Shown: positions 43,223-62,628 of the stretch, in pieces | Layout: each line of letters starts with the position of its first letter | Numbering within the stretch: the stretch's first letter is position 1 | IMG/VR virus record: IMGVR_UViG_3300023278_002893 | Location: 186,001-250,000 of that record | Direction: 5' to 3' (one strand) | Length of the DNA stretch: 64,000 nucleotides | The notes under the pieces: generated by a model | Told to the model about the DNA's origin: nothing | Databases searched by the model: none | The model's input: only the letters and a program-made list of their open reading frames with translations | Program-made: the position numbers and the translations under genes

Positions 43223-43232
43223 AGGCTACCTC

Positions 43233-44371: not shown

Positions 44372-44385
44372 TTATCCATCCTTAT

Positions 44386-45159: not shown

Positions 45160-45188
45160 TTCAATTATACCTCATATATGTATTTTTA

Positions 45189-46267: not shown

Positions 46268-46318
46268 AATAAACTCCTCATTCTCCCCTAAAAGACAGAC
46301 GTGTGTGAAAAAAAATTA

Positions 46319-48368: not shown

Positions 48369-48390
48369 AGTTAAATCCTTTCCTTATGTT

Positions 48391-49967: not shown

Positions 49968-49982
49968 TTTTAATCCCTTTCA

Positions 49983-50354
49983 TTAAAATACTTCATGTCC
50001 CATTTCTCTTATGAAGTGTATGATATCATCCTCTAAATCATCAAAGGCGGGTCCGTGATCCCATTCTTTCAAATGGGCCAGTTCGTGCGACAACGTTGAT
50101 AATATAGTCTTACTCGATAGCGCTATGCGCGGTTTGTTTAACTGGTGTAATCGAATATATAAAATCTTTTCGTTACAATTCCTTTCGTCAATATGTTTAG
50201 CACCAATACATTTTTTACAGGGCCAGCAAATACCGTAATACTGGGCTAATTTCTTAGTTTCTGGCACGATCTTTCCATAGGTCATTCCGAAATGTGCACA
50301 TACCTTATCCGCAATTTCGTGCATGTCTTTCCATAGAATGATACTATTTGTCAT
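49983..50354 (-). CDS. WLM/SprT-like zinc metalloprotease domain protein
   Basis: TLSHELAH....HGPAF. Confidence 0.75.
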   Translation of the reverse strand: MTNSIILWKDMHEIADKVCAHFGMTYGKIVPETKKLAQYYGICWPCKKCIGAKHIDERNCNEKILYIRLHQLNKPRIALSSKTILSTLSHELAHLKEWDHGPAFDDLEDDIIHFIREMGHEVF

Positions 50355-50403
50355 TTAGGTAGATCACCTCCAGCGTATTTGTTTATCTCCTATAGGTAAA
50401 TTC

Positions 50404-50880
50404 TCAGACTGCGAATTTTTCGTCATTGGCTTGTTCCACGCGGCGGGCCATAGTAATCTCTCTATCAAAGAAGAATCTAATCTCTCTATCAACATCTACA
50501 TCGTTAGCGCTGCCGTGTATTGCGTTTAGAGTAATGTTATTGTGATCCCCGAAGTCGTGTCGTATAGTCCCAGCCGTTGCCTCTGCGGGATGTGTCGCAC
50601 CAATTAATTCCCGAAACTCACTAATACCGTCGTGTTTCATTATTACCATTGGCCATACCGGACCCGCACATATAGTGGTGATCAGGTTAGGAAAGAAATC
50701 CTTATCCTTGTGCTCTTCATAGAAGAACTCCGCGCCCTCCTTGTGAATCTGAACTGATTTGACAATCAATATTGCAAATCCAGCATCTTCGATTCTGGAA
50801 ATAATCTCACCCACTTTTCTGGCTCTAACGGCGTGGGGCTTAATCATCCCCAATGTTATGTGATCTACGGTCTCATTCAT
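50404..50880 (-). CDS. ndk: Nucleoside diphosphate kinase
   Basis: IKPHAV, RELIGAT.P..A..GTIR, NAIHGS. Confidence 0.95.
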   Translation of the reverse strand: MNETVDHITLGMIKPHAVRARKVGEIISRIEDAGFAILIVKSVQIHKEGAEFFYEEHKDKDFFPNLITTICAGPVWPMVIMKHDGISEFRELIGATHPAEATAGTIRHDFGDHNNITLNAIHGSANDVDVDREIRFFFDREITMARRVEQANDEKFAV

Positions 50881-51134
50881 TTTGTACGCACCCTAACTCT
50901 GACTTTCCACCCTTCATCCGAGGAGCCCCTCTCCCAGGTACTATCAGGATAGAATATTTTCATTACGTGGATAATATAGTTCCAGTTGTTCTCAGTGTTG
51001 GGCATACCACCATTGAGAAGTAATTCTTTCGCGCTCCAAGTCCCAGCACGCCATTGACCTGCGTTCTCTCCCTCCGTTGATAGGAGAGTATCAATTCCTC
51101 TTACTAAACTTTCATGTTCTTGGACGGTAGGCAT
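50877..51134 (-). CDS. Hypothetical protein
   Basis: ORF track, coupled. Confidence 0.45.
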   Translation of the reverse strand: MPTVQEHESLVRGIDTLLSTEGENAGQWRAGTWSAKELLLNGGMPNTENNWNYIIHVMKIFYPDSTWERGSSDEGWKVRVRVRTK

Positions 51135-51646
51135 TAGTCCCAGGCCTCGTATATTAGTTTCTCGATCTTATCTCTGTAATTTCTCATTAAATACATCTCA
51201 AATAGCATTCTCTCCCAGAGATCGGGATTACTGATTCCCAGATACTTATCCCTTTCCAGGGCAAGTTTTATCTTGATCACGTTGGTTAGTTGATGTCGCC
51301 AGACAAAGAATTCTAGATATGCGGTATCTAAAGTTGAGATTTGTGCCGCATTTCCTTCGTCCAGCGAAGAGCCTGCGGTCAATTCCCATAAGCGCTCACA
51401 GCGCGCGTTTCGATCTCTAAGCTCTTTTATATTGGATGCGTCACCCCCTTCCACTATGAAACGCATAAAAGCACTGTCCATCGCAATTACACAGCTTCTG
51501 GCGGACATTAGAGACGTGTGATAGGTAAATCTTTGTTCGTTCCGCGCCATTTCCTCAGTAAGGGTATCCACACCACTCCTGTACTCTAATCCCAAAGCTC
51601 CCAGTAAAACTACAAGCACGAGTAATACAGAAAGCACTATTCGCAT
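51134..51646 (-). CDS. Membrane-anchored helical protein
   Basis: N-terminal hydrophobic IVLSVLLVLVVLLGALGL. Confidence 0.55.
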   Translation of the reverse strand: MRIVLSVLLVLVVLLGALGLEYRSGVDTLTEEMARNEQRFTYHTSLMSARSCVIAMDSAFMRFIVEGGDASNIKELRDRNARCERLWELTAGSSLDEGNAAQISTLDTAYLEFFVWRHQLTNVIKIKLALERDKYLGISNPDLWERMLFEMYLMRNYRDKIEKLIYEAWD

Positions 51647-51954
51647 CAGAACCTCCCAATATTAAGCAGTTGTGGTTTCTCTTCCTCCATATCTTTTAAT
51701 GTTCGATTAAGTCCCTCTACTAGTGTCTTGACTTCTTCCAAAGGTACAGAAACTATGGTAGTAAGTCTTGCGATTTCACTACCAAAATGATCTTTGATTC
51801 TCTTCTTATCGGCGGTCATGGTGTCAGGATCTTCCTTTTGAAATGACACATAGACCTCGCCCTCACCACTAATACCAATGAAATTACAACCAGGACATTC
51901 TACCTCTATGAAATCCCCCAAACGCTTCTGAACAGGATCATTTTTTGAGTTCAT
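51646..51954 (-). CDS. Hypothetical protein
   Basis: ORF track; RBS GGAGGGAG. Confidence 0.5.
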   Translation of the reverse strand: MNSKNDPVQKRLGDFIEVECPGCNFIGISGEGEVYVSFQKEDPDTMTADKKRIKDHFGSEIARLTTIVSVPLEEVKTLVEGLNRTLKDMEEEKPQLLNIGRF

Positions 51955-52200
51955 CTAGCTCCCTCCATCTGAAATAGAAATCAGACATTGATGTGTGGAT
52001 CCAAAGAGCCGCGCCCGGATTCTTCTCTACCGTAGATTTAACTAGTTCCAGCAGCATCATCTTTGTTATATAGTCGAGCATTGGGGGTTTATCTTTAGGA
52101 GCCATTATTATTATAAACTTCTTCTGTTTTATTTACCATGTGGATTAACCAAACAGCCTCTATCATGCAGGCGTTCATATCCTCAAGGGGAATTGAATGG

Positions 52201-52809
52201 TCATCTAGTACCTCTCGCATATATTTTAGCATTGGTAGTTGGGCCATAAGCTATCCTCCTCGCCTCTTCCAGATCGTATAGAAAATCCTCTTCGATCTTC
52301 GTATTTCGGTTACGTAATACGTAGGACGGATGGTATATAATGGAAACTAAGATATCCTCATCAAACGGTAGGGGTTCTACCCTCCCGCGCTCCTTGGTGA
52401 TCTTGATCTTGCGCCCAAGGAGATGGCTTGCTGATATTCTACCTAATGTTACTATAAGTTTAGGTTTCAGCACAGATACCTGGTCTTTCAACCAAGGCAT
52501 ACATGCCTCTACTTCTACTGGTAAGGGATCACGATTATCAGGAGGACGGCACTTGACGATATTAGTAATGAATACATCACTCCTATCTAATCCAACCTTC
52601 CTCAGAGATTCGGTCAGTATTTGACCGGATCTCCCCACGAAAGGTTCCCCTTGGTTATCTTCATTTTCTCCAGGTGCTTCCCCCACTATCATTATTCCCC
52701 TCGAAAGGAGGTTGGTACCGGGAATGGGACTCCTGCACGTTTTGTGCAGATCACATTTGGTACATAGTAGGATCTCAGAACTACAAATACTGACCATGTC
52801 CTTCACCAT
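52201..52809 (-). CDS. Uracil-DNA glycosylase family 4 (Fe-S)
   Basis: CTKCDL, VGEAPG..ED..G.PFVG, NIVKCRPP.NR, YHPSY. Confidence 0.93.
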   Translation of the reverse strand: MVKDMVSICSSEILLCTKCDLHKTCRSPIPGTNLLSRGIMIVGEAPGENEDNQGEPFVGRSGQILTESLRKVGLDRSDVFITNIVKCRPPDNRDPLPVEVEACMPWLKDQVSVLKPKLIVTLGRISASHLLGRKIKITKERGRVEPLPFDEDILVSIIYHPSYVLRNRNTKIEEDFLYDLEEARRIAYGPTTNAKIYARGTR

Positions 52810-53095
52810 TTACTTCCTCTCCACTCACCGTAGTGGGTGTTCTCTTTCCTCCCATCATGGAAGGATCCATTTGCATCCCCATGGGCATCCCCTCCATTCC
52901 AGGCATTCTGTCGAACATCGAAGGATCAACTTCTCCGCTGTCCATCATGTTCTTTAGATTTTCTTCATATTTTTTCTGGATTCGCCGGACATACCACGTG
53001 CCAAAAGTTACGCTTATCAATTGAAGCAAAATGTTGCCTAATACGAACGCAGCCAAAACCGACCAGAATATTTCCCAACTAAAACCAAAGAGCAT
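52781..53095 (-). CDS. Single-TM membrane protein
   Basis: Hydrophobic N-terminus, M/P/G-rich tail. Confidence 0.55.
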   Translation of the reverse strand: MLFGFSWEIFWSVLAAFVLGNILLQLISVTFGTWYVRRIQKKYEENLKNMMDSGEVDPSMFDRMPGMEGMPMGMQMDPSMMGGKRTPTTVSGEEVNGEGHGQYL

Positions 53096-53116
53096 TTATG
53101 GTCTCCTTTATATTCA

Positions 53117-53145
53117 ATTATATTTATTTTGGGGGGTGATGTCAA
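53117..53145 (-). promoter_or_regulatory. Consensus sigma70 promoter
   Basis: TTGACA-17-TATAAT. Confidence 0.85.
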
Positions 53146-53536
53146 GTCGTTGGTCCTTCCTGACTTAAGTATTGAATTTTTTTTTTAGCGTTTCGAAATC
53201 CGACTTCCCCTTTGTGTTATCTTATCCGTCTGTATTCCCTCTTAAATACATTCAGTTTCAATAAGGTTTTCCGTGATACGCCTGCTCGCTGTCGATCGGA
53301 AAATTCTTCCCATAGTTTATCTTCCGATCTCGTCACCCCCGCATCCCCCACACCCAATTCCTCTCTCAGAGCTGCTCACTCTCTTGGTTTCTAAAGACTG
53401 GACTCTCTAACCCATATGGTATTCCCTCTTATGGAGAAGGTATAGATCAGTGGGTGATCCTCTCTCTAAAGGATCTACACTTGCCCCATCAGATTATTTG
53501 ATACCCGCGCGATAATATTAGGTTTTTACACCCTTT

Positions 53537-53785
53537 TTACCGCCCACCTTGTCCGCAACCGAGATGCTTGTTTCTCCGGTTCCTAGCATGCGATGTTGTC
53601 CGGGGCGCTCCCGCATCATAGGGACTCGCTACGCTTCGTCCCGGGGAGCCATTGGGAGGAGGATACACCTTCTCCCATTTCGCCTGATCTTCTCTGTCTC
53701 TCTTCTCCATCCTGAAAATTATATCCTCAAGAACCTCTACCCGTTGCTCCAGAATTTCCATTCTCGACTTCGATGATGCTGGCAT
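53537..53785 (-). CDS. Hypothetical protein
   Basis: ORF track; RBS GGAGG. Confidence 0.45.
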   Translation of the reverse strand: MPASSKSRMEILEQRVEVLEDIIFRMEKRDREDQAKWEKVYPPPNGSPGRSVASPYDAGAPRTTSHARNRRNKHLGCGQGGR

Positions 53786-53788
53786 ATT

Positions 53789-54088
53789 TTAATCCTCCGC
53801 CATTTTGTTCATGACTTCGTAGGCCACTTCGGTACAAACCTCAGCTACGGTTTCCATCTCCTCATCAGTTAGGGGATGAAGCTCTTTCATGTTCTTCATC
53901 AAAACTCTCCTGACAACACCTGCGATCTCGCCTGGGGTTAATTCAGAAACTGGCAAGTAGCCAATTTCTTCTCGGGCCAGGAGAATTTTCTCTTCTATTG
54001 TAATCTGCTCGAGGTCTTCCATTGAATACTCATCTGGATTGTTTAATTCCGGTCTCATGCTCTTTGGTTCCTCTTCGTTGTTTAACAT
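53789..54088 (-). CDS. Acidic hypothetical protein
   Basis: ORF track. Confidence 0.45.
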   Translation of the reverse strand: MLNNEEEPKSMRPELNNPDEYSMEDLEQITIEEKILLAREEIGYLPVSELTPGEIAGVVRRVLMKNMKELHPLTDEEMETVAEVCTEVAYEVMNKMAED

Positions 54089-54365
54089 TTCTTTTCCTTT
54101 TCTCGTAAGCGGATAATTTTATTTGCCGCCTCCAAAAATTCTGCTAAGTGCGGGTAATTACTAACTATCTCTACTTAGAAATTCCTCAATTGCCTTATGT
54201 ACCCTCTCTTCTGCTTCTAAGATAATACGATGGCGTTCTTCCTCAGCCTTCTTCAGTTTTTCTACAATTTCGAAACAAATGCTTCCATTGATTGGAGTAT
54301 CATCCGTATTTATTCCGATGGACATAGTATCTCCCTCTAACTGTTTATTTGTGCTGCGGGAATCA

Positions 54366-56132
54366 TCAAGGCTGATCTGTGACAACACTGTTAATACCCG
54401 TAGCTGTGGCCCCTGTACCCGCGGCAATATCTATAATACCGGCGTAGTCAGTTCCCACATTTGGAAAATCATCTCCGGGCTTCCAATAGTGTATCAAGCT
54501 CGCACTACTTGTATAAGTCCCAGAATCTGTCGTGAGGTCGTAATCAAAACCTCCCGAAACTAGAGTCGGATACTGCCCCGGCTCTAGCGCTATATCCCAT
54601 ACCCCTATATGTCCTAAACTACCAGACCAAGCCGCTAGCGATGGTGCTGTGTCCTCTAAGAGGTCTCCTACGCGGAGTTGACGTCCACCCGTTGGCTCGT
54701 TCATGTTGCCAGTTCCGGAAAATAATAAGGTTTGGTCCGTGACAAGTAAGCCCTGATCGTATGCGATCAGGTTGGTCCCGTCCCAGACGCATGAGAAATT
54801 CCTCCACTGATTATGCTTCTGGATCTTATTGAAACGCGTTATACGTAATCTACGACCTAGAGAGTTTCCCAATTCTATGACAAGCTCTTCTTCATATTTG
54901 GAGTTTTCTAGTTTGGCCGCCCATATCAATATCTCACTTCTAGGGGTGCTCCCCTTTAGGTGTAATAACGTTCTATGACTATCAATTGCTGCTTGTGGGA
55001 CAAACAGGGTGGGTTTCAACCAAAAACCAAACGTCCATGCATTCCCGATACCTATTTCTTGATTGGGGGAACTTTCTAATCTATCACTAGATCCCCCAAA
55101 TTCTGTGGCTACTGAATTAGTTACCCCTACTCCCCCAGTAGTTAAACTAACCGCCCATTCTTGTGTCGCTGTCCCCGAAAGAGTAGAAGTTACAACAACT
55201 TTGAAATCCTGGCTCGGTTGTTGGCTTACATGTGGTATCCAAGCAACTGACCCTGTTGTGGGGGATATAGTCGCCCCCTCCGGATTAGTTTCGAATGTAT
55301 AAGTCAAAGTCAGGTCTTCGTCGCTTCGTGCATCCACTTCATAGGTGTAAGACTGAGACGTTAGACCTGAAGTAGTTGGTATCCCTGAAATTGTTGGATC
55401 GTGGTCATTGTATTGTACTATTAGGCGGAAACCACCCCCCGCGCGATCTTCTGCATCAAAGAAAACCCGTTCTTCGTCCGACCCGTCCCCGCTACTGCTA
55501 TTATACCAATCCAGGGCAAATGCGATTCCTGAGATTGTCGGGTTTGTACCCCGCCACGCTTCTAAGTTCTCAGCAATGGCATTTGTAGGGGCGGCTGAAA
55601 GTTCAAAGTCTGGTGAATAGTCCGGATCACCGATTGATCCTGAAGTACCCGTCAAGAAGTCACCACTGTCGTAAGTTATTGTACCTAATTCCGCCCCGCC
55701 GAAAACGCGTGATCCGCTAATAGTGTCTGATAACTCACCCGTAGGGAAAGGAAAATCAGTCGAACTTGTATAAGCCCCCCATCCTCCGGAAGTTCCTGAA
55801 AGGGGGACAGTCCAAACACCATCATCTTCGAGCATAAACACACGGAAACTATTATCAGTATCTGTTATAACTGGATTCAGGAAGAACGTGGTCTTCCAAT
55901 TAAGCTTTGCTTTAACATATGACGACCTGTTGGGGATGATTGATAAATCATAATAAAGAAATACCGCATCCGTTGGCTCAAATCCCTTACCTCCAACAGC
56001 CCCTACCCAGAGCTGCTCGGGGGATTCCGGGAGAGGCCAATGCGTCTCTTCATCGACATTGACGCGTACATCCCCCAAAAATCCATGACTATCACTTTCG
56101 GATACTGCGAAACTAGATTCCCGTAATACCAT
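54366..56132 (-). CDS. Probable virion adhesin: DNRLRE-like N-domain, Ig-like domain, LamG domain
   Basis: IP....VKAKLNW, MLEDDGVWT; PTISG.P...YTYEV.A...PEGATI...TG.V.W.P; WTFGFWLKP, WRNFSCVWDG. Confidence 0.7.
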   Translation of the reverse strand: MVLRESSFAVSESDSHGFLGDVRVNVDEETHWPLPESPEQLWVGAVGGKGFEPTDAVFLYYDLSIIPNRSSYVKAKLNWKTTFFLNPVITDTDNSFRVFMLEDDGVWTVPLSGTSGGWGAYTSSTDFPFPTGELSDTISGSRVFGGAELGTITYDSGDFLTGTSGSIGDPDYSPDFELSAAPTNAIAENLEAWRGTNPTISGIAFALDWYNSSSGDGSDEERVFFDAEDRAGGGFRLIVQYNDHDPTISGIPTTSGLTSQSYTYEVDARSDEDLTLTYTFETNPEGATISPTTGSVAWIPHVSQQPSQDFKVVVTSTLSGTATQEWAVSLTTGGVGVTNSVATEFGGSSDRLESSPNQEIGIGNAWTFGFWLKPTLFVPQAAIDSHRTLLHLKGSTPRSEILIWAAKLENSKYEEELVIELGNSLGRRLRITRFNKIQKHNQWRNFSCVWDGTNLIAYDQGLLVTDQTLLFSGTGNMNEPTGGRQLRVGDLLEDTAPSLAAWSGSLGHIGVWDIALEPGQYPTLVSGGFDYDLTTDSGTYTSSASLIHYWKPGDDFPNVGTDYAGIIDIAAGTGATATGINSVVTDQP

Positions 56133-56136
56133 TTAG

Positions 56137-56733
56137 TTAAGGGTTGCGGCGGATAGATACGTGCGTGCCATCTCCTAATTTAGTATGTTGGAAATTTCCA
56201 ACTAGTGGCGTAAGAATGTCAGATACTCTGTCTGAACGCCATTGATGTCCAAACTCCGTAGGAAAATCCCACTGCATAAGTCTGAATATTTTATTTCCGC
56301 CCTTAAATTCTAGATCCGTCTCAAGAAATGCCTTCATTAGGAAAGCAAAGGATCTATTAGCGGTATGTCCTGGTATATTGCGAATACCCGGAGTTATCAT
56401 AGCAGATACTTCCATTAAATTCCCATCATCGGATTCTGTACGTACATTATAAAGATTACATGTACCCAGAAGCACATCTCGTTTATTGTTCTGATCTAAG
56501 GTATAGACTCCAAAATTGACTACACCCAAGTCATCGTCATAAGTAGGGGAATCTCTTCTACAGAGGAAGACGTCAGGTTTATCTGCGAGTTCAATTGCTC
56601 GGAATATAACCCTTCTGAGAATTTTTATCGCCTGATGACGCCGATCTCTAGTCATATCCCTAAAATGAACGAGTCTTATATCCGCGCCGCGGGGATTAGT
56701 AATTGTAAAAGGCTTTATGGCAGGTAATTTCAT
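56137..56733 (-). CDS. Unknown protein, paralog of 26177..26815
   Basis: DGNLMEVSAMITPGIRN versus NGNDIQVSALVTPFLRN. Confidence 0.6.
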   Translation of the reverse strand: MKLPAIKPFTITNPRGADIRLVHFRDMTRDRRHQAIKILRRVIFRAIELADKPDVFLCRRDSPTYDDDLGVVNFGVYTLDQNNKRDVLLGTCNLYNVRTESDDGNLMEVSAMITPGIRNIPGHTANRSFAFLMKAFLETDLEFKGGNKIFRLMQWDFPTEFGHQWRSDRVSDILTPLVGNFQHTKLGDGTHVSIRRNP

Positions 56734-56737
56734 TTTA

Positions 56738-57052
56738 CTAACCTCTAGGGTTCCTCAGTTGATTGAGGTGGTGGATTGCCAATACGTCATCCGCCGCATC
56801 TGCTAAATTCTTTTCATCTAGGGGATCAAGTACTAAACCCAAAAGAGACTCAACCTGACGAGGACCATATTCCTCATTCAGTAGAGCCTCTTCATTTGTT
56901 TCGTCAATGGAGATAGAAGTGTGGTGATGCATTTTATCTCGCCAATCTGCTTCTAGTAAATCCGCATCGTCACACTTTTCAGTTGGCGCAAAAATACTCT
57001 GTTTGCGACGCGTCTTCAGTTCCTCCTGAAATATATCATTGACCTTTGTCAT
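56738..57052 (-). CDS. Hypothetical protein
   Basis: ORF track. Confidence 0.45.
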   Translation of the reverse strand: MTKVNDIFQEELKTRRKQSIFAPTEKCDDADLLEADWRDKMHHHTSISIDETNEEALLNEEYGPRQVESLLGLVLDPLDEKNLADAADDVLAIHHLNQLRNPRG

Positions 57053-57056
57053 TGTT

Positions 57057-57458
57057 TTATGTCCTATTTACCGTTATTCCTAGTGGTATTCTAAGCTCCA
57101 TAACGTTTTCTTGGCTGTACTCCCGCATATTTGGCGAACTAGACTTACTTGACGCTCGCCTCTCAACCGACCGCTGCAATAGCTGTTCCTCTATTTCTTC
57201 AATGGTGAAAGGAAGATCAACAGTCTTGGCTTCTTTAATCAGACCCCACTTAGGTGTGAGTTTCTTTACGACCCAAGCAGTAAATCGTTCTTTTATGGAA
57301 ACCGGTTCTGGCGTAAAGGTCACGTACCACAATTCGTCTTGGATCGCATCCCGCATAATTTTCTTTTCTTCGGCGGGGAGATTTTCTTCTTCACGTTCCC
57401 CCACCTTAGCTACTAGTTGTCTTGGCATTACCTTCTCCTTCCTTAAATATCTGCCCAT
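57057..57458 (-). CDS. Hypothetical protein
   Basis: ORF track; start probably ~57428. Confidence 0.45.
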   Translation of the reverse strand: MGRYLRKEKVMPRQLVAKVGEREEENLPAEEKKIMRDAIQDELWYVTFTPEPVSIKERFTAWVVKKLTPKWGLIKEAKTVDLPFTIEEIEEQLLQRSVERRASSKSSSPNMREYSQENVMELRIPLGITVNRT

Positions 57459-57786
57459 CCGCCATCATCTGACGCAGGGAAGAATAATATCCTACGAATC
57501 TCTGGAAGATCTCATTGTAAGTCTGAGTGAGTTCTTCTTTACTTCCCGTGACGGACAATACTCCTTCATTGGCCTCCTCGGCGGTGATGAGGCCCTTCTC
57601 GGTGAGAAGGTCTAGTGTCTTAAGGCTGACTGACATGTTCTCGGTCAGCAAATATAGGAGAGCATTGAAGTTTGCCTTCAGCTCGTCCTTGTCCATGTCC
57701 CCTCCTAGCAGGGGCACTACTACATCGTCGGGTCTATCCTCTGGTGGGGTTTGGGTCAGATTAAGAGACCCCGTTACGTCAATCAT
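57406..57786 (-). CDS. Hypothetical protein
   Basis: ORF track; downstream of a consensus promoter. Confidence 0.5.
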   Translation of the reverse strand: MIDVTGSLNLTQTPPEDRPDDVVVPLLGGDMDKDELKANFNALLYLLTENMSVSLKTLDLLTEKGLITAEEANEGVLSVTGSKEELTQTYNEIFQRFVGYYSSLRQMMADGQIFKEGEGNAKTTSS

Positions 57787-57891
57787 GGTAATCCTCGTGT
57801 GTTAGCAAAGTGGCAGCTAAATGGTTGATATCGAAAGGTTTAGTGCGATATCCTTAGCAACATACTAACTATATCGCAGTATCCGCAAACA

Positions 57892-57920
57892 ATTATAAGT
57901 TCTGCCGCGCGTAATGTCAA
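57892..57920 (-). promoter_or_regulatory. Consensus sigma70 promoter
   Basis: TTGACA-17-TATAAT. Confidence 0.85.
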
Positions 57921-58107
57921 TGTAACCCCTATAATAGTAGGGTGTGGTAAAACCACTTATATAAGGCTAATAGTGAGGTAATACAGATACTTATACCTCC
58001 AAGCCAATAACCTAGGTTCCAGGATTTCTCACATATATAACACTCCTCTCCGAGCCAATGGATAAGGATCAGCCAGAGCAGAGACACCGCTATGAGCGCC
58101 AGATAAA

Positions 58108-58326
58108 TCAATCTTCTATGTCCTCGTCCAGTTCGTCCGAGGTCACACCGACCAGGAGACGAATGGCCTCGAATAGATTTTTCAAATCGGTGGAAGAAAC
58201 ATATCCCTCCCAGATTTTATACTTGTTCCAGTAAAGACTGGATCTTCCCCTTCTGTCAGTATGTAGTTCGTACATTAACTGCTCCTTAATGGTCCAAGAA
58301 CTTTCATGTTCTGTGCGATCAGCCAC
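58108..58326 (-). CDS. Hypothetical protein
   Basis: ORF track. Confidence 0.4.
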   Translation of the reverse strand: MADRTEHESSWTIKEQLMYELHTDRRGRSSLYWNKYKIWEGYVSSTDLKNLFEAIRLLVGVTSDELDEDIED

Positions 58327-58583
58327 TCCCCGCCTTGGCTGTTCGGTCTCTTGAAACTAACGAAGTCGCGGATCTCAACTTTGTACCACACCCTACCTTT
58401 CGTCGAGAGGTGAGGGGCGCTCGGTTCGCGACCAGCGTGCCAACCGGGACGGTGCGCAAAGCCTTTTGTTGGAATGTCCTCAGCGGGGAGCCACACCCCG
58501 ATCGGGATCCGTTGTCGTGTTCCGATGAACAGAGGCCCGATGGTACCGTCCTTGCGTTGTTTAAACAATTTGTAAGCTTTCAT
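58275..58583 (-). CDS. Phage hypothetical protein (AYKLF...PLFI...GFA.RPGWH)
   Basis: RBS GAGGAG before ATG 58583. Confidence 0.65.
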   Translation of the reverse strand: MKAYKLFKQRKDGTIGPLFIGTRQRIPIGVWLPAEDIPTKGFAHRPGWHAGREPSAPHLSTKGRVWYKVEIRDFVSFKRPNSQGGEWLIAQNMKVLGPLRSS

Positions 58584-58599
58584 CTTTCTCCTCAAACCA

Positions 58600-58628
58600 A
58601 TAATACGAGAAGTGTTCCCCCGTGTCAA
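58600..58628 (-). promoter_or_regulatory. sigma70-type promoter
   Basis: TTGACA-17-TATTAT. Confidence 0.8.
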
Positions 58629-58700
58629 GCACTATCTTCCCCTTTTCACTCGGGGTGGTTTATGATCTATATAGTGGCAAAGAAAGTGATTCCAACGAGA

Positions 58701-58729
58701 ATAATAAGAGAGAATAGAGAGGATGTCAA
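58701..58729 (-). promoter_or_regulatory. sigma70-type promoter
   Basis: TTGACA-17-TATTAT. Confidence 0.8.
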
Positions 58730-58987
58730 ATAAATGACTAGGAGGTCAATATACATCTTCCCCCTTGAGATATAATGGGAGATAATATTGCCTTAGGGAC
58801 CCTAGCATAGTTACCTCACCTTGTGAGGTAATCATTGTTTATACCCCCCTCCTCCGTCGAGGGATATACACATTGATTAACTATGCTACACGCGCTACCA
58901 CTTGTTACCTCACTGCGTGAGCTAATAATTCTCGCTTCGCTCGAATTAGACATGTCGTCTACTTCCAGCAAGCTGAAAGGAGACACC

Positions 58988-59026
58988 ATGTCACGACACG
59001 GAGGTCGCAAGCTCCCTCGTCACTGA
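58988..59026 (+). CDS. 12-aa micropeptide MSRHGGRKLPRH
   Basis: RBS GAAAGGAG 5 nt before ATG. Confidence 0.4.
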   Translation: MSRHGGRKLPRH

Positions 59027-59089
59027 GCTTGTCTAACGCAGCACTCATGCTGCACCGCACGGAGAGCTACGCTCTACCGTGCAGGAGGT

Positions 59090-59284
59090 ATGACTATGTC
59101 ATCCCCCACGCTCGTGCTCCGTGTTCCGACCTGCGACGCTGTCGATTGCATCGACCCCAGCGCAGGGTGCTACCCCGCACTCGATGTCTTCGAAGATATC
59201 GAGCTGTGCGTACATCACGAGAGTGAGTACGCCACTGCGGGTCGCATCAATGAGAGCGATCGACTCGTCGATCACTCTTCCTGA
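59090..59284 (+). CDS. Small Cys/His acidic protein
   Basis: RBS AGGAGGT; followed by a G/C hairpin. Confidence 0.6.
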   Translation: MTMSSPTLVLRVPTCDAVDCIDPSAGCYPALDVFEDIELCVHHESEYATAGRINESDRLVDHSS

Positions 59285-59454
59285 TGCTTGGGGACCCCCC
59301 TCTGGGGGGTCCCTGTGGTTACCTCTCCGAGGTACCCTTCTATCCCTCGCTTCGCTCGGGTACCCCATCACCACGTGGATCTCGCTGCGCGAGCCCTAGT
59401 TGCATCACTTCGTGATACAATCATTTCTCGCTTATCACTCGAAAGGAGTATGAC

Positions 59455-59628
59455 ATGCCCAGTCTCGTCTTCGACTTTGACTGTTCCTGTGAGGTCCTCC
59501 CTTCGGGGGACCTCTGGTGCTGCGATGTGTGCAGCACCGAAGCTGACCCTTGGGGTCAGCTTGCTACCGAAGAATCCGATCGGATTCTCGGACACAACAC
59601 CTTCCTCGATATCTCTCGAAAGGAGTAG
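59455..59628 (+). CDS. 57-aa Cys-rich protein MPSLVFDFDCSCEVLPSGDLWCCDVC... (not in track)
   Basis: RBS GAAAGGAG 6 nt upstream; its 3' end supplies the RBS of the next gene. Confidence 0.6.
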   Translation: MPSLVFDFDCSCEVLPSGDLWCCDVCSTEADPWGQLATEESDRILGHNTFLDISRKE

Positions 59629-59631
59629 ATC

Positions 59632-59754
59632 ATGCTCGAACAATTCGCTATCGCTCTTGTCCCCACCATCGCGTTGCTCTTGGTGGGTCGCTTGATCTGG
59701 ATCACCGATCCAGAGGTCAAGCGACTGCGCAAAGCTGAGCAGAAGCTCAGCTAG
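59632..59754 (+). CDS. 40-aa single-TM protein MLEQFAIALVPTIALLLVGRLIWIT... (not in track)
   Basis: RBS GAAAGGAG; hydrophobic helix and basic tail. Confidence 0.6.
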   Translation: MLEQFAIALVPTIALLLVGRLIWITDPEVKRLRKAEQKLS

Positions 59755-59760
59755 CGCATC

Positions 59761-59789
59761 GGACCCCCCTAACGGGGGGTCCTCTTTTT
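59761..59789 (+). terminator. Intrinsic terminator-like hairpin
   Basis: GGACCCCCC-TAAC-GGGGGGTCC followed by TCTTTTT. Confidence 0.7.
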
Positions 59790-59954
59790 ACAGCACCGAC
59801 CCGCTTCGCTAAGTCGGTCTTGTTCATTTACTCGTGAGTACCCCCTTCGGGGGTACCAACGAGCACCGCTCGTTCCTCGCTCTCGTCGTTCCTCCTCACT
59901 AGTTGCATCACTTTGTGATACAATCATTTCTCGCTATCGCTCGAAAGGAGATCC

Positions 59955-60185
59955 ATGTTTATCATTCTTCTCGATTCCTCGAAGAACGAACTCCGCGTCG
60001 TCCGTGCTGACTCTGTCAGCGACTCCGGGACGCGGGTCGTTGTGGTTCCTCACCACAACGGTCACTCGTACGACTTCGAACTCCCTCCGGGAGTCGAAGC
60101 CTTCGCAGACCTCGCTACCTTCGACGATGTCGAAGCTGCGTGGTCGTCGGTTCGCACCGACTTCTGCCCCTCGCTCCACCCCTAG
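59955..60185 (+). CDS. Small hypothetical protein
   Basis: RBS GAAAGGAG after a repeat module. Confidence 0.65.
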   Translation: MFIILLDSSKNELRVVRADSVSDSGTRVVVVPHHNGHSYDFELPPGVEAFADLATFDDVEAAWSSVRTDFCPSLHP

Positions 60186-60304
60186 CGGGGTGGGGTGTCC
60201 CCCTTCGGGGGTAGTTACCTCACTCTGTGAGGTAATACTTCTCTGGGTACTAGCGTACCCTTTGAAGTATTATCTTTCTCGTTAATCTCTCGAAAGGAGA
60301 CTCT

Positions 60305-60784
60305 ATGCGTTGCTCGTTCTGTAACGATCCCCGTGGGATCATCATGGTTGATGGTATCCCCGAGCCCTGCTGTGATGAGATCATCACGCAGCAAGTCCGC
60401 GAAGTACGCGGCATCTGTGTCAATTGTGGGGAATCCCACACTCGCATGAACGAGGGTGTAGACACCCTCTCCGCCATGTGCTCCGATGAGTGCCTCACCG
60501 AAGCCATGGATCGCATCGAAGCAATCGCGCTGCGCGACGATTGTGGCGGTGAGATGCCCGACCAGGAGGTCATGGACCTCCATGACTCCGTCGATCGTAT
60601 CGACGCAGCCAACCTCGCGTGGTACCGCCACGCGGGTCAGTACATCGACAACGGTGTCGATGACTGTCTCGGTACTCCTCCCTTCTGGTTGGAGTACTCG
60701 ATAGAGCGCGACGCTCTGGAGAGCGATGCACGCATCGCTAAGCTCCAGAACGACGAGCACAAGTACGGGTGTATCCCGTTCTAG
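60305..60784 (+). CDS. Acidic Cys-rich (zinc-binding) hypothetical protein
   Basis: CSFC..CC..CVNC..CSDEC; RBS GAAAGGAG. Confidence 0.7.
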   Translation: MRCSFCNDPRGIIMVDGIPEPCCDEIITQQVREVRGICVNCGESHTRMNEGVDTLSAMCSDECLTEAMDRIEAIALRDDCGGEMPDQEVMDLHDSVDRIDAANLAWYRHAGQYIDNGVDDCLGTPPFWLEYSIERDALESDARIAKLQNDEHKYGCIPF

Positions 60785-60869
60785 TGCTCTGGTCCCCCTA
60801 GCGGGGGACCTACCGCTCCGCTCTCGCTTCGCTCACTAGTTCCTCCACTTCGTGAAGGAGGTCACTCAC

Positions 60870-60944
60870 ATGACCAAGTTGATCCTGTGCACCTACGCTC
60901 CGCTGCTCTACTTGCTTGCGGAATTCGCTTCACTCATCCCTTAA
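60870..60944 (+). CDS. 24-aa hydrophobic peptide MTKLILCTYAPLLYLLAEFASLIP
   Basis: RBS AAGGAGGT. Confidence 0.5.
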   Translation: MTKLILCTYAPLLYLLAEFASLIP

Positions 60945-60962
60945 CCAAGAAGGAGCTACGCT

Positions 60963-61016
60963 ATGGATGATCTCGACCGCGACATCCAGGACGTCATTGA
61001 CGACCTGTGCGAATAG
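60963..61016 (+). CDS. 17-aa acidic peptide MDDLDRDIQDVIDDLCE
   Basis: RBS AAGGAG 7 nt upstream. Confidence 0.45.
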   Translation: MDDLDRDIQDVIDDLCE

Positions 61017-61524
61017 ACCCATGTGGGTAGGAGTGCGTTACCGCGCACTCCTGCCCACCCGCTTCGCTCGCTACGCTCGCTCGCTCCTCTAAGAGCAAGG
61101 GAGGACTCTGTTGAGTCCTACTCCAGTACCGCTCGTCCCTCGCTCTCGCTTCGCTCACTCCCCTTCGGGGATAGTCCCATCACTTCGTGATCGGTAGTAC
61201 ATTTTTTTCGCTCATCGCTCAAAAAGGAGTCCTCCATTGGATGGATGACACCCCACAGCTACCTGCCCGAGCACGGCTTGGTAGCACCACGGGGGCCGTA
61301 GTGCTCCCTCCGCTGCGAGACGCAGTACAAGCAGTGACCTGCTTGTGGCGGAGGTTGATCAGCTCGCTTCGCTCGCTAACGGATGCTCCGCATCCTTAGA
61401 GACCCGGAGCGTCCCCCCTACGGGGGGTAGTTTCACCGCTGCGCGATGAAGTATCGGTTCTTGCGAACCTCGTTGTTAGACCACAGTGGTCTGATGCAGG
61501 GTTCGCTTGATAGGAGGACATGAC

Positions 61525-61881
61525 ATGTCCAATGCAGTAAAGACCACGATCAAGAAGTTTTCGTTCACGAAGTGGATCAGTGAGATCGAAGGTTCGGGTG
61601 CTCGCGTACTCGGATTCTGTGAGATGACGGTCTGCGTCGATGGTCTGGAGTTCACGTTCAGTGACCTGAAGGTTCGCGTGAATCAGAAGGGTGAGCATCA
61701 CCTGTGCGCACCGAGTCGTCGCTACAAGAACTCCGAAGGTGCCTGGAGGACGTCGAGCGCGTACAAGTTCGACAATTCGACGTATGCTGCTCTGCGCAGT
61801 TTCGTCTACGGTCGCGACGAAGTGAAGGTCGCGATCGACGAAGCCGCGGATCTCGAAAAGGAGATTCCGCTGAGCGCGTAG
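61525..61881 (+). CDS. SpoVG-like nucleic-acid-binding protein
   Basis: GFCEMTV...FTFSDLKV....GEHHLCAPSRRYK..EG.W matches the SpoVG pattern; RBS AGGAGG. Confidence 0.7.
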   Translation: MSNAVKTTIKKFSFTKWISEIEGSGARVLGFCEMTVCVDGLEFTFSDLKVRVNQKGEHHLCAPSRRYKNSEGAWRTSSAYKFDNSTYAALRSFVYGRDEVKVAIDEAADLEKEIPLSA

Positions 61882-62104
61882 TACATAGCAGTACCTCTAA
61901 GTAGGGGTACTGCTAGTCCCACCCCACCGCTTCCCGGGGGGTGGGACCTCGCTCTCTTTCTGCTATCACGCGTGCTCATTGAGAAATGAAGGACTCTGAT
62001 GAGTCCTCCTTTATTGACGTTCGCTTCGCTCTCTCTCAGTTCCTCCGCTTCGCTCCCCCCTTCGCTATAGTCTCCGCATTCTCTGGATGCGGTTACTATT
62101 ATAA

Positions 62105-62134
62105 GAGACCCTCTAACGAGGAGTCTCTTTTTTT
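62105..62134 (+). terminator. Intrinsic terminator-like hairpin
   Basis: GAGACCCTC-TAAC-GAGGAGTCTC followed by a T7 run. Confidence 0.65.
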
Positions 62135-62497
62135 ATTGACGCGCGCTGTTGCTCGGTGGATTCGTTCGGTACTGTTCATTCGGTGGTTGATTCGTTTACT
62201 CTCATTTGTTAGGGCACCACCCCAGTAGACGAAACTAATTACGGAGATATCAATTCCTTACGGAAACGCTGATTTACTCGTCGTCGCTGTGCTCCTCGTT
62301 GTTCCTTCTTTTTTTGATCTTTCATCTCGGTGCACCATTCGTAGAGATATCTATGGATGCACGCCCGTCGGATACGTAAGTACTTGCAATACTCCGACAG
62401 TGCTTTATCGATACGTCTAGGTAGTTCCTAGCGGACGAGATGGGAGATCTTTTTTCGCGGCCGCTCAAAAAAGCCTATTACAAGGAGATTAGAAACA

Positions 62498-62628
62498 TGG
62501 AACACATCCTCAAGAAGATGGCTGTACCCAACATCTTGCACTGCGCAGAACTAGTGGTTCTGACCATCGTCGTGCATTTGGCCTCAGGATTGGTATTCTT
62601 ACCATTATTCATCCCGAGGCAAGAATAA
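62498..62628 (+). CDS. Small membrane peptide MEHILKKMAV... (start approximate)
   Basis: RBS AAGGAG; hydrophobic C-half. Confidence 0.45.

Follow-up and report, generated by a model that had tools for sequence, protein, structure and literature searches.

How is a cluster of tiny phage genes packed with short palindromes expressed, and do these palindromes act in the DNA or in the RNA? The question is raised by a 3.3-kb cluster of about ten tiny genes in an uncultivated jumbo bacteriophage, represented by a contig of 297,725 bp (IMG/VR record IMGVR_UViG_3300023278_002893). We analyzed a stretch of 64,000 nucleotides of this contig (positions 186,001 to 250,000 of the record, hereafter the window) and extended the searches to record 186-295.6 kb, which corresponds to 37% of the genome and leaves out the other 186 kb. 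The initial annotation of the window had described an array of hairpins with GNA loops and tandem G·A pairs on the template strand, lying between tiny genes, and had proposed that this strand is selected to fold as single-stranded DNA or extruded cruciforms, for example in a first-injected early region read from hairpin promoters. The observation proved to be real and strong, while its interpretation received only partial support from our data.

Hairpin excess and strand asymmetry

All individual hairpins listed in the initial annotation were present at their positions. To verify that their number exceeds that of shuffled sequence, which had been set beforehand as a condition for the reading to hold, we counted the perfect hairpins (stem >=5, loop 3-4) in region 58800-62100 of the window. 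We found 61 of them, compared to 7.5±3.0 (maximum 17) in 300 dinucleotide shuffles, which is roughly eight times more than expected by chance. When only stems of 6 bp or more are considered, the density is 11.5/kb, which is 20 times that of the other 58.5 kb of the window (0.56/kb). The boundaries of the island are sharp, and no second island occurs in the 109.6 kb of the contig that we examined, apart from one single-gene cassette at window-equivalent 66.6-67.4 kb. The folding energy has a z of about -5 on either strand, compared to about -1 in controls. Unlike what was initially described, however, the hairpins are not only intergenic. They are nearly as dense inside the ORFs, where we observed 29 against 8.8±2.4 after synonymous-codon shuffling.

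The 28 non-coding hairpins are strand-specific. The closing pair is 5'C-G3' in 23 of them and G-C in none, and the loops are T..C in 15, G..A in 1 and C..T in 1 (p=5e-4 against either alternative, p=1e-9 against local base composition). On the + strand these are c-T(N)NC-g loops, which read cGNAg/cGNNAg on the template strand. The same asymmetry is detectable in five independent metagenomic relatives (37 against 8 against 3; T..C against G..A, p=1.5e-5), where the conservation of the loops and of the pairing had been indicated in advance as a further test. There are exceptions, such as a GTTA loop on the + strand in L128 (L numbers designate loci).

Other details of the sequence point in the same direction. 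The motif CGCTTCGCTC (up to 1 mismatch) occurs 12 times, all on the + strand and all in the island, against 2.4 expected. The heptamer GCTNCGC occurs 45 times across the loci, against 9 for GCGNAGC on the + strand. TC/TC tandem mismatches flanked by covarying outer stems occur 4 times in the window and 3 times in relatives, while GA/GA on the + strand occurs 0 times. In 26 distinct promoter-associated hairpins (P hairpins) we counted 194 Watson-Crick pairs, 8 C·A mismatches, which are T·G wobbles on the bottom strand, and 0 G·T on the + strand (p=0.008). When all hairpins are considered, the A·C against G·T test gives only p=0.064, and only 18 of the 26 P-hairpin loops are GNA on the template strand. 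The stems of the P hairpins covary: 83.8% of positions are paired against 69.4% in shuffles, with 35 double-change cells against 12.1 and a covariation score of 0.462 against 0.196 (0/500; slid controls <=0.165).

A repeated cassette between tiny genes

The island is a self-contained cluster built from one repeated composite cassette, which is composed, in this order, of a G/C-run hairpin just after each stop codon, a C/T-rich tract carrying the heptamer GCTNCGC, the tetranucleotide T(A/T)GT, the centre of a 7-9-bp hairpin with a pyrimidine triloop exactly 13 nt further on, and a short leader with a strong ribosome-binding site followed by the gene (Table 1). The distance of 13 nt between T(A/T)GT and the loop centre is found in 19 of 22 modules. 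A covariance model of the module returned matches only on the + strand, and within 110 kb of this phage only in the island, before a SpoVG-like gene and before an SSB gene.

Table 1. Elements of the island and its immediate context (window coordinates; D numbers indicate sequence families)
Position	Strand	Element	Details	Module score (bits)
58600..58628	-	Sigma70-type promoter (TTGACA-17-TATTAT) of the leftward gene block	11/12 match; faces away from the island	
58701..58729	-	Second sigma70-type promoter of the leftward block	11/12 match	
58808..58833	+	P-module 1: TAGTT followed by a 9-bp hairpin (loop CTT)	Flanks AGGGACCC and GTTTATACCCCC conserved in L125 and L132	31.0
58902..58927	+	P-module 2: TTGTT followed by a hairpin	Loop TGC, one C·C mismatch	28.0
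58926..58948	+	M-type hairpin TAATTC-TC-GC-TTC-GC-TC-GAATTA	Leader of cassette 1; outer stem covaries in L127 (CTTAT/ATAAG)	
58988..59026	+	12-codon ORF remnant	Strong ribosome site; L127 has the Cys-rich gene at this position	
59096..59284	+	ORF, 62 aa	Acidic	
59291..59313	+	G/C-run hairpin (10 bp, loop TCT)	7 nt after the stop codon, no T-run	
59344..59360	+	M-type hairpin CCC-TC-GC-TTC-GC-TC-GGG		
59381..59393	+	Hairpin CTCGC-TGC-GCGAG	Heptamer GCTGCGC; centre 12 nt before the G of TAGTT	
59397..59422	+	P-module 3	Loop TTC, one C·A mismatch	31.0
59455..59628	+	ORF, 57 aa	Cys-rich and acidic	
59632..59754	+	ORF, 40 aa	Hydrophobic; homologue in L127 813-938	
59761..59790	+	Canonical intrinsic terminator	9-bp G/C stem, loop TAAC, T-run	
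59838..59856	+	Hairpin GTACCCCC-TTC-GGGGGTAC		
59900..59925	+	P-module 4	Near-copy of module 3, loop TTT	
59927..59946	+	Leader hairpin TTTC-TC-GC-TATC-GC-TC-GAAA	Abuts the ribosome site; related copies at 59424-59448, 59601-59625, 60275-60299 and 61204-61228 (D3)	
59955..60185	+	ORF, 76 aa		
60176..60211	+	Two hairpins, CCACCCC-TAGC-GGGGTGG and CCCCC-TTC-GGGGG	Stop codon in the loop of the first; abutting TAGTT (D7)	
60212..60237	+	P-module 5	Perfect 9-bp stem, loop TCT	33.1
60305..60784	+	ORF, 159 aa	Cys-rich and acidic; 14 internal hairpins (3.0 expected); homologues in L127 and L128	
60791..60810	+	Hairpin GGTCCCCC-TAGC-GGGGGACC	After the stop codon, no T-run	
60811..60836	+	C/T-rich tract with heptamers GCTCCGC and GCTTCGC (60826-60832)	Centre of the second heptamer 10 nt before the G of TAGTT	
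60837..60862	+	P-module 6	3' arm overlaps the ribosome site	27.8
60870..60944	+	ORF, 24 aa	Hydrophobic	
60963..61016	+	ORF, 17 aa	Acidic	
61058..61079	+	(CGCT)n-like tract	Overlapping heptamers GCTTCGC and GCTACGC	
61126..61171	+	Conserved C/T-rich tract, then hairpin TCCCC-TTC-GGGGA	Heptamer at 61148-61154; hairpin abuts TAGTC (D20, D7)	
61172..61197	+	P-module 7		27.2
61241..61399	+	ORF, 52 aa	Contains M-type hairpin AGC-TC-GC-TTC-GC-TC-GCT at 61361-61377	
61413..61427	+	Hairpin CCCCCC-TAC-GGGGGG	Abuts TAGTT (D7)	
61428..61453	+	P-module 8	Loop TGC, one C·A mismatch	24.7
61456..61530	+	Conserved structured leader of the 118-aa gene	Hairpin with loop TTGC (in 5 of 6 relatives), second hairpin, segment GGTTC complementary to the 3' arm of the first hairpin, and hairpin GGACAT-GAC-ATGTCC over the ribosome site and start codon	
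61525..61881	+	ORF, 118 aa, SpoVG-like fold	Best-conserved gene of the island (54-62% identity in five relatives); not hairpin-rich	
61886..62007	+	Three long hairpins after the last gene	The last (61990-62007) is followed by a T-rich tail	
62020..62056	+	Two further GCTTCGC heptamers	62023-62029 and 62047-62053	
62067..62135	+	Weak P-like module (TAGTC plus hairpin), then a terminator (stem with loop TAAC, then T7)	May be a small non-coding transcript; right edge of the island	15

The contrast with a left arm driven by sigma70, which had been part of the initial interpretation, is real. The left arm has nine sites of >=10/12, all on its coding strand, of which two match 12/12 and four 11/12. 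No sigma70 promoter lies on the coding strand of the island, and the right arm is depleted in such sites (8 against 18±3.9).

Possible template folding and its alternatives

The hairpins are selected as structures. Their non-Watson-Crick details (cGNAg and cGNNAg loops, the GCGNAGC mini-hairpin, tandem G·A pairs in a Y-GA-R context, and T·G wobbles) are favourable only on the strand that is the template for these genes, which are probably immediate-early. Our preferred, although tentative, reading is that the template DNA strand itself folds, through supercoil-driven extrusion that a single-strand-binding protein may stabilise, and that these hairpins are start signals, and perhaps stop signals, for a polymerase or holoenzyme other than host sigma70 RNA polymerase, as at the early promoters of coliphage N4. 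The same palindromes are necessarily copied into the mRNAs, where they also act as 5' and 3' protective stem-loops, terminators and ribosome-site occluders. The excess of hairpins, their strand asymmetry and covariation, the order of the cassette, the absence of sigma70 promoters and the conservation in relatives come directly from the analysis, whereas folding at the DNA level, promoter function and the existence of a dedicated polymerase are inferred from them.

This reading is supported by the similarity with N4, whose promoters P1-P3 read [stem]-GC-T(T/C)C-GC-[stem]-TT(at)-G, with the loop centre at -11 (PMC4496689). Eight heptamers of the 45 have their centre 9-13 nt (mode 11) before the G of T(A/T)GT, compared to 1.6% of background positions, and the phage encodes three SSB paralogues. 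On the other hand, only these 8 of the 45 heptamers sit at an N4-like distance from a conserved G, 29 have no T(A/T)GT nearby, and most have only 2 Watson-Crick pairs plus putative G·A pairs. The search for a virion or single-subunit RNA polymerase, which had been proposed beforehand to verify the reading, gave a negative result: no RNA polymerase or sigma gene is recognisable in record 186-295.6 kb, either by Pfam or by tblastn with N4 vRNAP and RNAPII. There are no transcription start data, and whether the region is injected first was not assessed, as a contig gives no indication of this. In addition, there are many more hairpins than transcription units, and the hairpins inside the genes are not explained by any promoter model. 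Some elements are plainly at the RNA level, such as the U-tract terminators and the hairpin over the ribosome site and start codon, which keeps pairing through an ATG-to-GTG change.

The alternative that survives best, which is possible but somewhat less likely, is that all hairpins act in the + strand mRNA, and that the island is transcribed from ordinary duplex promoters of an unrecognised type or as one long transcript that is then processed. The hairpins would be 5' stem-loops starting 1-3 nt after the start site, 3' exonuclease barriers, terminators, translational occluders and attenuator-like switches, resulting in unusually stable or tightly controlled early messages, and the loop bias would reflect some RNA-level constraint, for example pyrimidine-only unpaired segments that avoid a purine-specific nuclease. 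Canonical terminators at 59761, 62105 and L001:17047, the fixed distance between T(A/T)GT and the hairpin centre, the fixed position of the leader hairpin next to the ribosome site and the start-codon hairpin agree with this. Moreover, a three-way complementarity that suggests alternative RNA folds covaries in the window (GGTTC/GAACC/GGTTC), and hairpins occur inside ORFs beyond the synonymous expectation, of which five of 14 sit at homologous positions in an orthologue with different stem sequences. However, there are 0 G·U pairs but 8 C·A mismatches in 213 stem positions of the P hairpins, and the conserved TC/TC tandem mismatches are destabilising in RNA. The c-UNC-g and c-UNNC-g loops have no known RNA stability, while their complements are the classic stable DNA loops (PMC13037366). 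Finally, the stems are symmetric about a 3-nt loop and not about a UNCG tetraloop, and most G/C-run hairpins lack a U tract.

Two further readings are unlikely. In the first, the bottom strand is transcribed, for example late in infection from the right edge near 62100, into a highly structured antisense RNA that silences or processes the early messages and to which the GNA/GNNA loops, tandem G·A pairs and G·U wobbles would belong. All bottom-strand features are also good RNA motifs, and a perfect TATAAT on the - strand at 62098-62103 resembles the -10 regions of the two leftward promoters (family D12). Nevertheless, no -35 element lies there and the promoter scan did not call it, the tetraloops are mostly GYUA rather than GNRA, the right-hand neighbours are all + strand genes, and the relatives show no conserved leftward promoter. 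In the second, the mini-hairpins are replication origin or priming signals, read by a primase on the lagging-strand template as in phage G4 and RSF1010 ssiA, where GCGNAGC and CCGAAGG mini-hairpins occur (PMC13037366). The island does lie at the switch between leftward and rightward genes, near a sign change of GC skew at about 62 kb and next to replication genes, with clamp loader, UDG and NDK genes to the left and SSB and PIF1 helicase genes to the right. It is, however, G+C-rich with no A+T-rich unwinding element or iterons, its elements repeat once per gene in register with ribosome sites and stop codons, and the same module precedes isolated genes elsewhere (SpoVG-like and SSB).

The weakest readings are very unlikely. 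Weak sigma70-like promoters (TAGTTA-16-AATCAT) with a palindromic operator in the spacer, bound by a dimeric repressor, suggested by one 9/12 match at 58902-58929 and by the A2/T6 pattern of AATCAT, AATAAT and AATACT in five window copies, are largely refuted by the covariation, as the half-sites differ completely between copies and covary (ACCTCAC, GCATCAC, CCCCAT, CCTCGC). In addition, the '-10' is not conserved in orthologues, and the real sigma70 promoters of the phage are near-perfect. A functionless by-product, either foreign DNA of higher G+C (0.57 against 0.44; GC3 0.66-0.78 against 0.33-0.47) with moron-like cassettes or the result of template-switch mutation that perfects quasi-palindromes, is contradicted by the covariation, by the conservation of grammar, loop bias and compensatory changes across relatives whose proteins are only 54-62% identical, and by the excess over dinucleotide and synonymous shuffles.

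Comparison with known systems

The closest system is that of the early promoters of N4 and N4-like phages (Schitoviridae), which are read by the injected virion RNA polymerase. In both cases the hairpin is on the template strand with a 3-nt GNA-type loop closed by C-G, the core heptamer is identical (coding strand GCT(T/C)CGC), a conserved G lies about 11 nt downstream of the loop centre (here in a subset), several such signals sit among small early genes (LUZ7 has nine; PMC9163698), and the late or structural genes run from sigma70 promoters. SSB is involved in N4, and SSB paralogues are present here. The phage is instead about 298 kb and unrelated in gene content, no giant virion polymerase has been found so far in the 37% of the genome examined, the few Watson-Crick pairs of most heptamers are extended by putative tandem G·A pairs, and a second, longer hairpin follows at a fixed distance after T(A/T)GT. 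Hairpin density is 4 times that of the N4 early region (4.6/kb) and extends into the ORFs, and the island is internal in the contig.

The PeSLs (promoter-early stem-loops) of T4-like phages are composite terminator/promoter cassettes between small variable genes (PMC2839356, PMC4122927). Also there a repeated, conserved stem-loop-plus-promoter cassette lies between tiny genes of unknown function, and gene order and content are shuffled between relatives: the Cys-rich gene is first in L127 and fifth here, and the first cassette here has lost its gene. PeSLs carry ordinary sigma70 early promoters and one terminator hairpin, while here there is no sigma70 promoter, each cassette has several hairpins, and the loops are strand-specific DNA-type loops.

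Intrinsic terminators and mRNA-stabilising stem-loops, for example those of T7 transcripts, share with the island G/C-rich hairpins right after stop codons, three of which have U tracts, and a hairpin within 1-3 nt of the likely start site. Here most hairpins lack U tracts, there are no G·U pairs, and the loops and mismatches are unfavourable in the RNA sense. The single-strand promoters (Frpo/ssi type) in the leading regions of conjugative plasmids likewise express early anti-defence-type small genes from folded single-stranded DNA on entry, but they are long (~300-nt) hairpins that rebuild a duplex -35/-10 promoter, and nothing of that kind is present here.

Finally, a related group is that of the d(GCGNAGC)/d(GCGNNAGC) mini-hairpins and tandem sheared G·A pairs, together with the single-strand initiation signals of G4, St-1, alpha3 and RSF1010 ssiA (PMC13037366). 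The bottom strand of the island carries exact GCGAAGC, GCGCAGC, GCGTAGC and GCGGAGC, cGNNAg tetraloops, and tandem GA in the required 5'-Y-GA-R-3' context. Those signals occur once or twice at origins of single-stranded replicons, whereas here there are dozens, in register with genes of a double-stranded phage.

Genomic context of the hairpin island

The contig that carries the island (JGI 3300023278, Ga0255981_100001, 297,725 bp, also in IMG/VR), of which the window is record positions 186,001-250,000, belongs to a jumbo phage that encodes a large terminase, clamp-loader subunits, an actin-like protein, nucleotide-metabolism enzymes and homing endonucleases. We found no detectable DNA or protein relatives among 50,697 deposited phage records, either with blastn of the island or with tblastn of a neighboring 588-aa protein. 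A homolog search with the latter returned only Ig-domain hits, and PHROGs annotated almost nothing. The leftward gene block has a G+C content of 0.44 and is driven by near-perfect sigma70 promoters, all on its coding strand, with two 12/12 and four 11/12 matches in the last 20 kb. From about 62.5 kb onward, small rightward genes run for at least 47 kb with a G+C content of about 0.50. The island lies exactly between the two blocks.

The observation made in the initial annotation is correct, as all of its example hairpins are present where it placed them. Positions 58800-62100 hold 61 perfect hairpins (stem >= 5 bp, loop 3-4 nt) compared to 7.5±3.0 in dinucleotide shuffles, and for stems >= 6 bp the density is 11.5/kb compared to 0.56/kb elsewhere in the window. 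The edges are sharp, and in the 109.6 kb of this genome that we assembled there is no second island, but only a one-gene cassette. Minimum free energies are about 5 standard deviations below shuffles on either strand, against about 1 in controls. The G+C content of the island is 0.57, and GC3 is 0.66-0.78 compared to 0.33-0.47 in the left arm. Beyond what had been noted initially, hairpins are almost as dense inside the ORFs (15/kb) as between them (19/kb), with 29 observed against 8.8±2.4 after shuffling of synonymous codons. In the orthologous Cys-rich gene of a relative, 5 of 14 hairpins recur at the homologous position with quite different stem sequences. The well-conserved 118-aa gene is the exception to this density.

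The island is filled by ten + strand ORFs of 12-159 codons, each with an AAGGAG-type ribosome site, of which two are certainly real genes. The 118-aa protein has five metagenomic homologs at 54-62% identity, and its predicted structure (pLDDT 76) best matches SpoVG (2ia9; E 8.6e-3; TM 0.49/0.59). SpoVG proteins bind nucleic acids, and a distant paralog (weak Pfam SpoVG hit, E 0.0033) lies 5 kb to the right. The 159-aa Cys-rich protein recurs in two of the metagenomic relatives, L127 and L128.

Between the genes, one composite cassette is repeated. It starts with a G/C-run hairpin a few nucleotides after the stop codon, followed by a C/T-rich tract of consensus aCCGCTCGTyCCTCGCTCTCGCTnCGCTCAcG, the motif T(A/T)GT(T/C), a 7-9-bp hairpin and a leader, which often contains a hairpin with TC/TC mismatches abutting the ribosome site. 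The T of T(A/T)GT lies exactly 13 nt before the center of the hairpin loop in 19 of 22 modules.

Features of the island, of the two flanking arms and of related loci (window positions unless a locus is named; L001 and L134-L137 carry right-arm sequence, L125, L127 and L132 are metagenomic relatives)
Position	Strand	Feature
1-58,583	-	Leftward gene block (left arm)
4217-6559 and 26825-31540	-	780-aa protein with chitin-binding peritrophin-A (CBM_14) repeats and DUF6582, and 1571-aa protein with a concanavalin-like (Laminin_G_3) domain; probably virion or host-binding proteins
46693-47400, 23852-24490, 39543-40019	-	Two HNH and one LAGLIDADG homing-endonuclease-like genes, interspersed among replication and metabolic genes
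40994-42310	-	Actin-like protein, strong Volactin family match (E 2e-65) and weaker MreB match; uncommon in phages
38800-58780		Left-arm segment scanned for sigma70-like sites
58988-59026 (compared with L127 157-618)	+	12-codon ORF of the first cassette, at the position of the Cys-rich gene in L127
59381-59393	+	Heptamer hairpin with a 5-bp stem
59761-59790	+	G/C-rich hairpin followed by a T-run
60305-60784	+	159-aa Cys-rich ORF
61525-61881	+	118-aa gene, predicted SpoVG-like fold, best-conserved protein of the island
62105-62135	+	G/C-rich hairpin followed by a T-run
L001:17047		G/C-rich hairpin followed by a T-run
62446-62470; window-equivalent 63843 and 67481; L125 2843; L132 940		T6-C-GC-GGCC-GC-TC-A6 before the first right-arm gene, a hairpin of the same TC/TC type conserved in two relatives; second motif, ATCCGCCGCTGAAAAAT(G/A)CCAAT, before two other right-arm genes; may be a different promoter class
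L001 14887-15465 (window-equivalent 65.2-65.8 kb)		192-aa gene made of 72-nt tandem repeats, leucine-rich-repeat-like, weak Recep_L_domain hit
Window-equivalent 66.6-67.4 kb		One-gene cassette
L135 17215-17239 (window-equivalent about 87,282) and L001 16362-16387		T(A/T)GT-hairpin module before a phage SSB gene and before a 189-aa SpoVG-like gene; the latter has its own G/C-run, T-tract terminator and forms a one-gene copy of the cassette
L136 7056-7586, 11316-11618, 14600-15001		Three SSB-family genes (one faint Pfam hit); unusual in one phage and possibly relevant to hairpin handling
L137 14046-14471; L135 9332-9904		Acb5-family gene and faint macro-domain gene; candidates for anti-defense functions, which fits an early or middle region
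L134 900-20372		Right-arm segment scanned for sigma70-like sites

Strand asymmetry and covariation of the hairpins

Strand-specific enrichment, whose absence would have counted against the initial annotation, was found. Among the 28 non-coding hairpins, the closing pair is 5'C-G3' in 23 and G-C in none, while loops are T..C in 15, G..A in 1 and C..T in 1 (P = 5e-4 against either alternative and P = 1e-9 against local composition). The 15 loops are c-T(N)NC-g and read cGNAg and cGNNAg on the bottom strand. The motif CGCTTCGCTC (up to 1 mismatch) occurs 12 times, always on the + strand and only in the island, and is the commonest 10-mer in 70 kb. The core TC-GC-loop-GC-TC, flanked by outer stems that differ but stay paired, occurs 4 times here and 3 times in relatives, whereas the mirror form never occurs. 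The sequence criteria of the d(GCGNAGC) mini-hairpin and of tandem sheared G·A pairs are fulfilled on the bottom strand in all 7-8 TC/TC hairpins, and the tandem GA always sits in the 5'-Y-GA-R-3' context needed for sheared pairs. Actual folding was not tested, because the DNA parameters of ViennaRNA carry no GNA bonus. An energy comparison of the two strands did not discriminate between them: ViennaRNA gives TTC and GAA triloops the same energy, and the strand difference follows GC skew in the controls too. We rejected a reading of the loops as UNCG tetraloops because the stems are symmetric about 3-nt loops, and only G-run stems could shift register. No Rfam 15 family matched either strand of 58400-62600 with E <= 1.

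To assess whether these features are conserved, we used the 118-aa family, which led to five independent loci (L123, L125, L127, L128 and L132) from marine-sediment and other metagenomes. A metagenome scan with this family added only L128, and a scan of a collection of genome contigs found nothing. Motif scans of IMG/VR with the TAGTT-hairpin, the leader motif, or the heptamer plus TAGT returned only this contig or single chance hits; one locus, L140, is unrelated, A+T-rich DNA. Contigs L125 and L126 (GCA_044232445.1 and GCA_044232185.1), which carry the 118-aa gene and the same cassettes, are deposited within 'Nitrososphaerales archaeon' bins. This is probably phage DNA mis-binned with an archaeal genome, because the related phage uses canonical bacterial sigma70 promoters. 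The five loci share almost no 30-mers with one another or with the window. All carry the same cassette, hairpin densities of 6-19/kb, and the same loop bias (T..C 37, G..A 8 and C..T 3, P = 1.5e-5).

Covariation in related phages had also been named in advance as a test, and it was detected. The 22 aligned T(A/T)GT-hairpin modules are 83.8% paired compared to 69.4% in shuffles, with 35 double-change cells against 12.1 and a covariation score of 0.462 against 0.196 (0/500 shuffles; slid controls <= 0.165). Six of nine stem positions show compensatory changes, and one pair shows all four Watson-Crick types. This shows selection for pairing and rules out a sequence-specific duplex operator, so that we rejected a sigma70 promoter combined with the palindromic operator of a dimeric repressor, which requires conserved half-sites. 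In 26 distinct copies there are 194 Watson-Crick pairs, 8 C·A mismatches, which are T·G wobbles on the bottom strand, and no G·T on the + strand (P = 0.008). When all hairpins are considered, the same A·C against G·T comparison is only a trend (P = 0.064). Eighteen of the 26 loops are TNC. A covariance model finds the module only on the + strand, and in 110 kb of this phage only in the island, before the 189-aa SpoVG-like gene and about 90 nt before an SSB gene.

Gene order differs among the window, L127 and L128. The first cassette of the window keeps its module, leader and ribosome site but encodes only 12 codons, which looks like a deletion or shuffling scar.

Transcription signals and the search for a polymerase

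We next asked which known signals could account for transcription of the island. Whether its genes are preceded by ordinary sigma70 promoters (TTGACA-17±1-TATAAT) bears on a condition set beforehand as contrary to the hairpin reading, and none was found: the best + strand match in the island is 9/12. In the scanned segments, the left arm has nine sites >= 10/12, all on its coding strand, while the right arm is depleted in sigma70-like sites (8 against 18±3.9) and has none >= 10/12 on its coding strand. This suggests that two or three transcription regimes operate in one genome. Most G/C-run hairpins also do not conform to intrinsic terminators, as only three are followed by a U tract and about eight other post-stop G/C-run hairpins have no T-run.

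We then compared the island with the early region of coliphage N4. On the coding strand, its three promoters read GTTGC-TTC-GCAAC-ttat-G, AAGAAGC-TCC-GCTTCTT-tt-G and AAGCTGC-TCC-GCAGCTT-tt-G. The heptamer is therefore GCT(T/C)CGC, centered 11 nt before the initiating G, in agreement with the published description of a GC-rich heptamer at -11 and a template-strand GNA loop with a sheared G·A pair, extruded by supercoiling and stabilized by SSB (PMC4496689, PMC13037366). The commonest motif of the island is that same heptamer, and across all loci GCTNCGC outnumbers its complement 45 to 9 on the + strand. The loop and heptamer features of N4-type promoters are therefore present. The stem of 5-7 Watson-Crick pairs formed by inverted repeats flanking the heptamer is seen in one window copy, and L128 has a 4-bp stem, but most copies have 2 Watson-Crick pairs plus TC/TC (GA/GA on the template strand) and then outer stems of 3-6 bp, or no outer stem at all, so that the evidence on stems falls on both sides. 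There are no 5'-end data. As a proxy for the distance to the start site, 8 of 45 heptamers have their center 9-13 nt (mode 11) before the G of T(A/T)GT, against 1.6% of background positions, while 29 of 45 have no T(A/T)GT nearby. The three G/C-run hairpins that abut TAGT put that G at +9 to +10.

A search for a virion or single-subunit RNA polymerase had been suggested from the start. No polymerase or sigma gene appears in the Pfam lists for record 186,001-295,584, and tblastn with N4 vRNAP, mini-vRNAP, RNAPII, gp2 and SSB against 110 kb gave nothing significant (best E 0.025 with vRNAP and RNAPII). Record 1-186,000 was not covered, so this result neither establishes nor excludes such an enzyme in the genome. 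Dependence on negative supercoiling and SSB and location in the first-entering DNA were not measured either, and the only circumstantial support comes from the three SSB paralogs, one of which is preceded by the T(A/T)GT-hairpin module.

Interpretation and comparison with known systems

Our analysis establishes that the hairpins are real, selected and strand-specific, and that the optimized strand is the template for the genes of the island; their extrusion and their reading by a polymerase are inferred. The proposal in the initial annotation that this strand is selected to fold as single-stranded or extruded DNA is thus partly supported. We tentatively favor, as the most economical mechanism, an N4-type one in which extruded template-strand hairpins signal to a non-sigma70 polymerase. 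The same palindromes would then serve in the transcripts as terminators, protective stem-loops and translational occluders.

A purely RNA-level reading is somewhat less likely but possible, since some elements clearly work in RNA. Besides the three hairpins with U tracts, the hairpin GGACAT-GAC-ATGTCC covers the ribosome site and start codon of the 118-aa gene, and in L127 it becomes GGACAC-TAC-GTGTCC, keeping the stem while the start codon changes to GTG. Moreover, the 3' arm of a hairpin with loop TTGC can also pair with a downstream copy of its 5' arm, and all three segments covary in the window. Finally, a hairpin that begins 1-3 nt after T(A/T)G is what a 5'-terminal protective stem-loop would look like.

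We also consider a more far-reaching possibility, which is unlikely but not excluded. The template strand of the whole island, genes included, may be kept foldable because this segment spends part of the infection single-stranded or extruded. It would be read by a hairpin-recognizing polymerase that arose independently of the N4 enzyme in a jumbo-phage lineage, and would represent a second, unrelated 'hairpin-coded' immediate-early expression system. In this view, mini-hairpins extended by tandem G·A pairs replace the Watson-Crick stems, and hairpins within the genes protect or mark the exposed DNA. Antisense RNA, origin or priming signals, operators and by-product explanations are unlikely even when taken together.

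Promoters that work as extruded DNA hairpins are known only from N4-like podophages, and we found no description of hairpin promoters in jumbo phages in the papers searched. The same heptamer and the same strand logic now appear in an unrelated ~298-kb phage lineage from sediments, conserved by covariation and combined with tandem G·A mini-hairpins and a second fixed-distance hairpin. This suggests that structure-coded transcription signals are more widespread than thought, and provides a concrete, synthesizable set of about 30 natural variants for testing how such signals are read. LUZ7, an N4 relative, has nine hairpin early promoters among small genes (PMC9163698). In the N4-type view, the three-tier layout of N4 would also be mirrored here, with hairpin early promoters, a middle class of its own, and sigma70 late promoters. 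However, the early region of N4 has only 4.6 hairpins/kb, and the fourfold higher density here, and above all the hairpins inside the ORFs, need another explanation. The hairpin saturation of the coding sequences is a separate, unexplained phenomenon, which bears on how early phage genes survive host nucleases or defenses.

Architecturally, the cassettes resemble the PeSL terminator/promoter modules that shuffle small early genes in T4-like phages (PMC2839356, PMC4122927). As in PeSLs, a conserved cassette is repeated between small variable genes (repeat families D4-D10 and D20 of the island) and gene order is shuffled among relatives, but the promoter type is different. The cassette structure extends the PeSL idea of gene shuffling to a non-sigma70 system.
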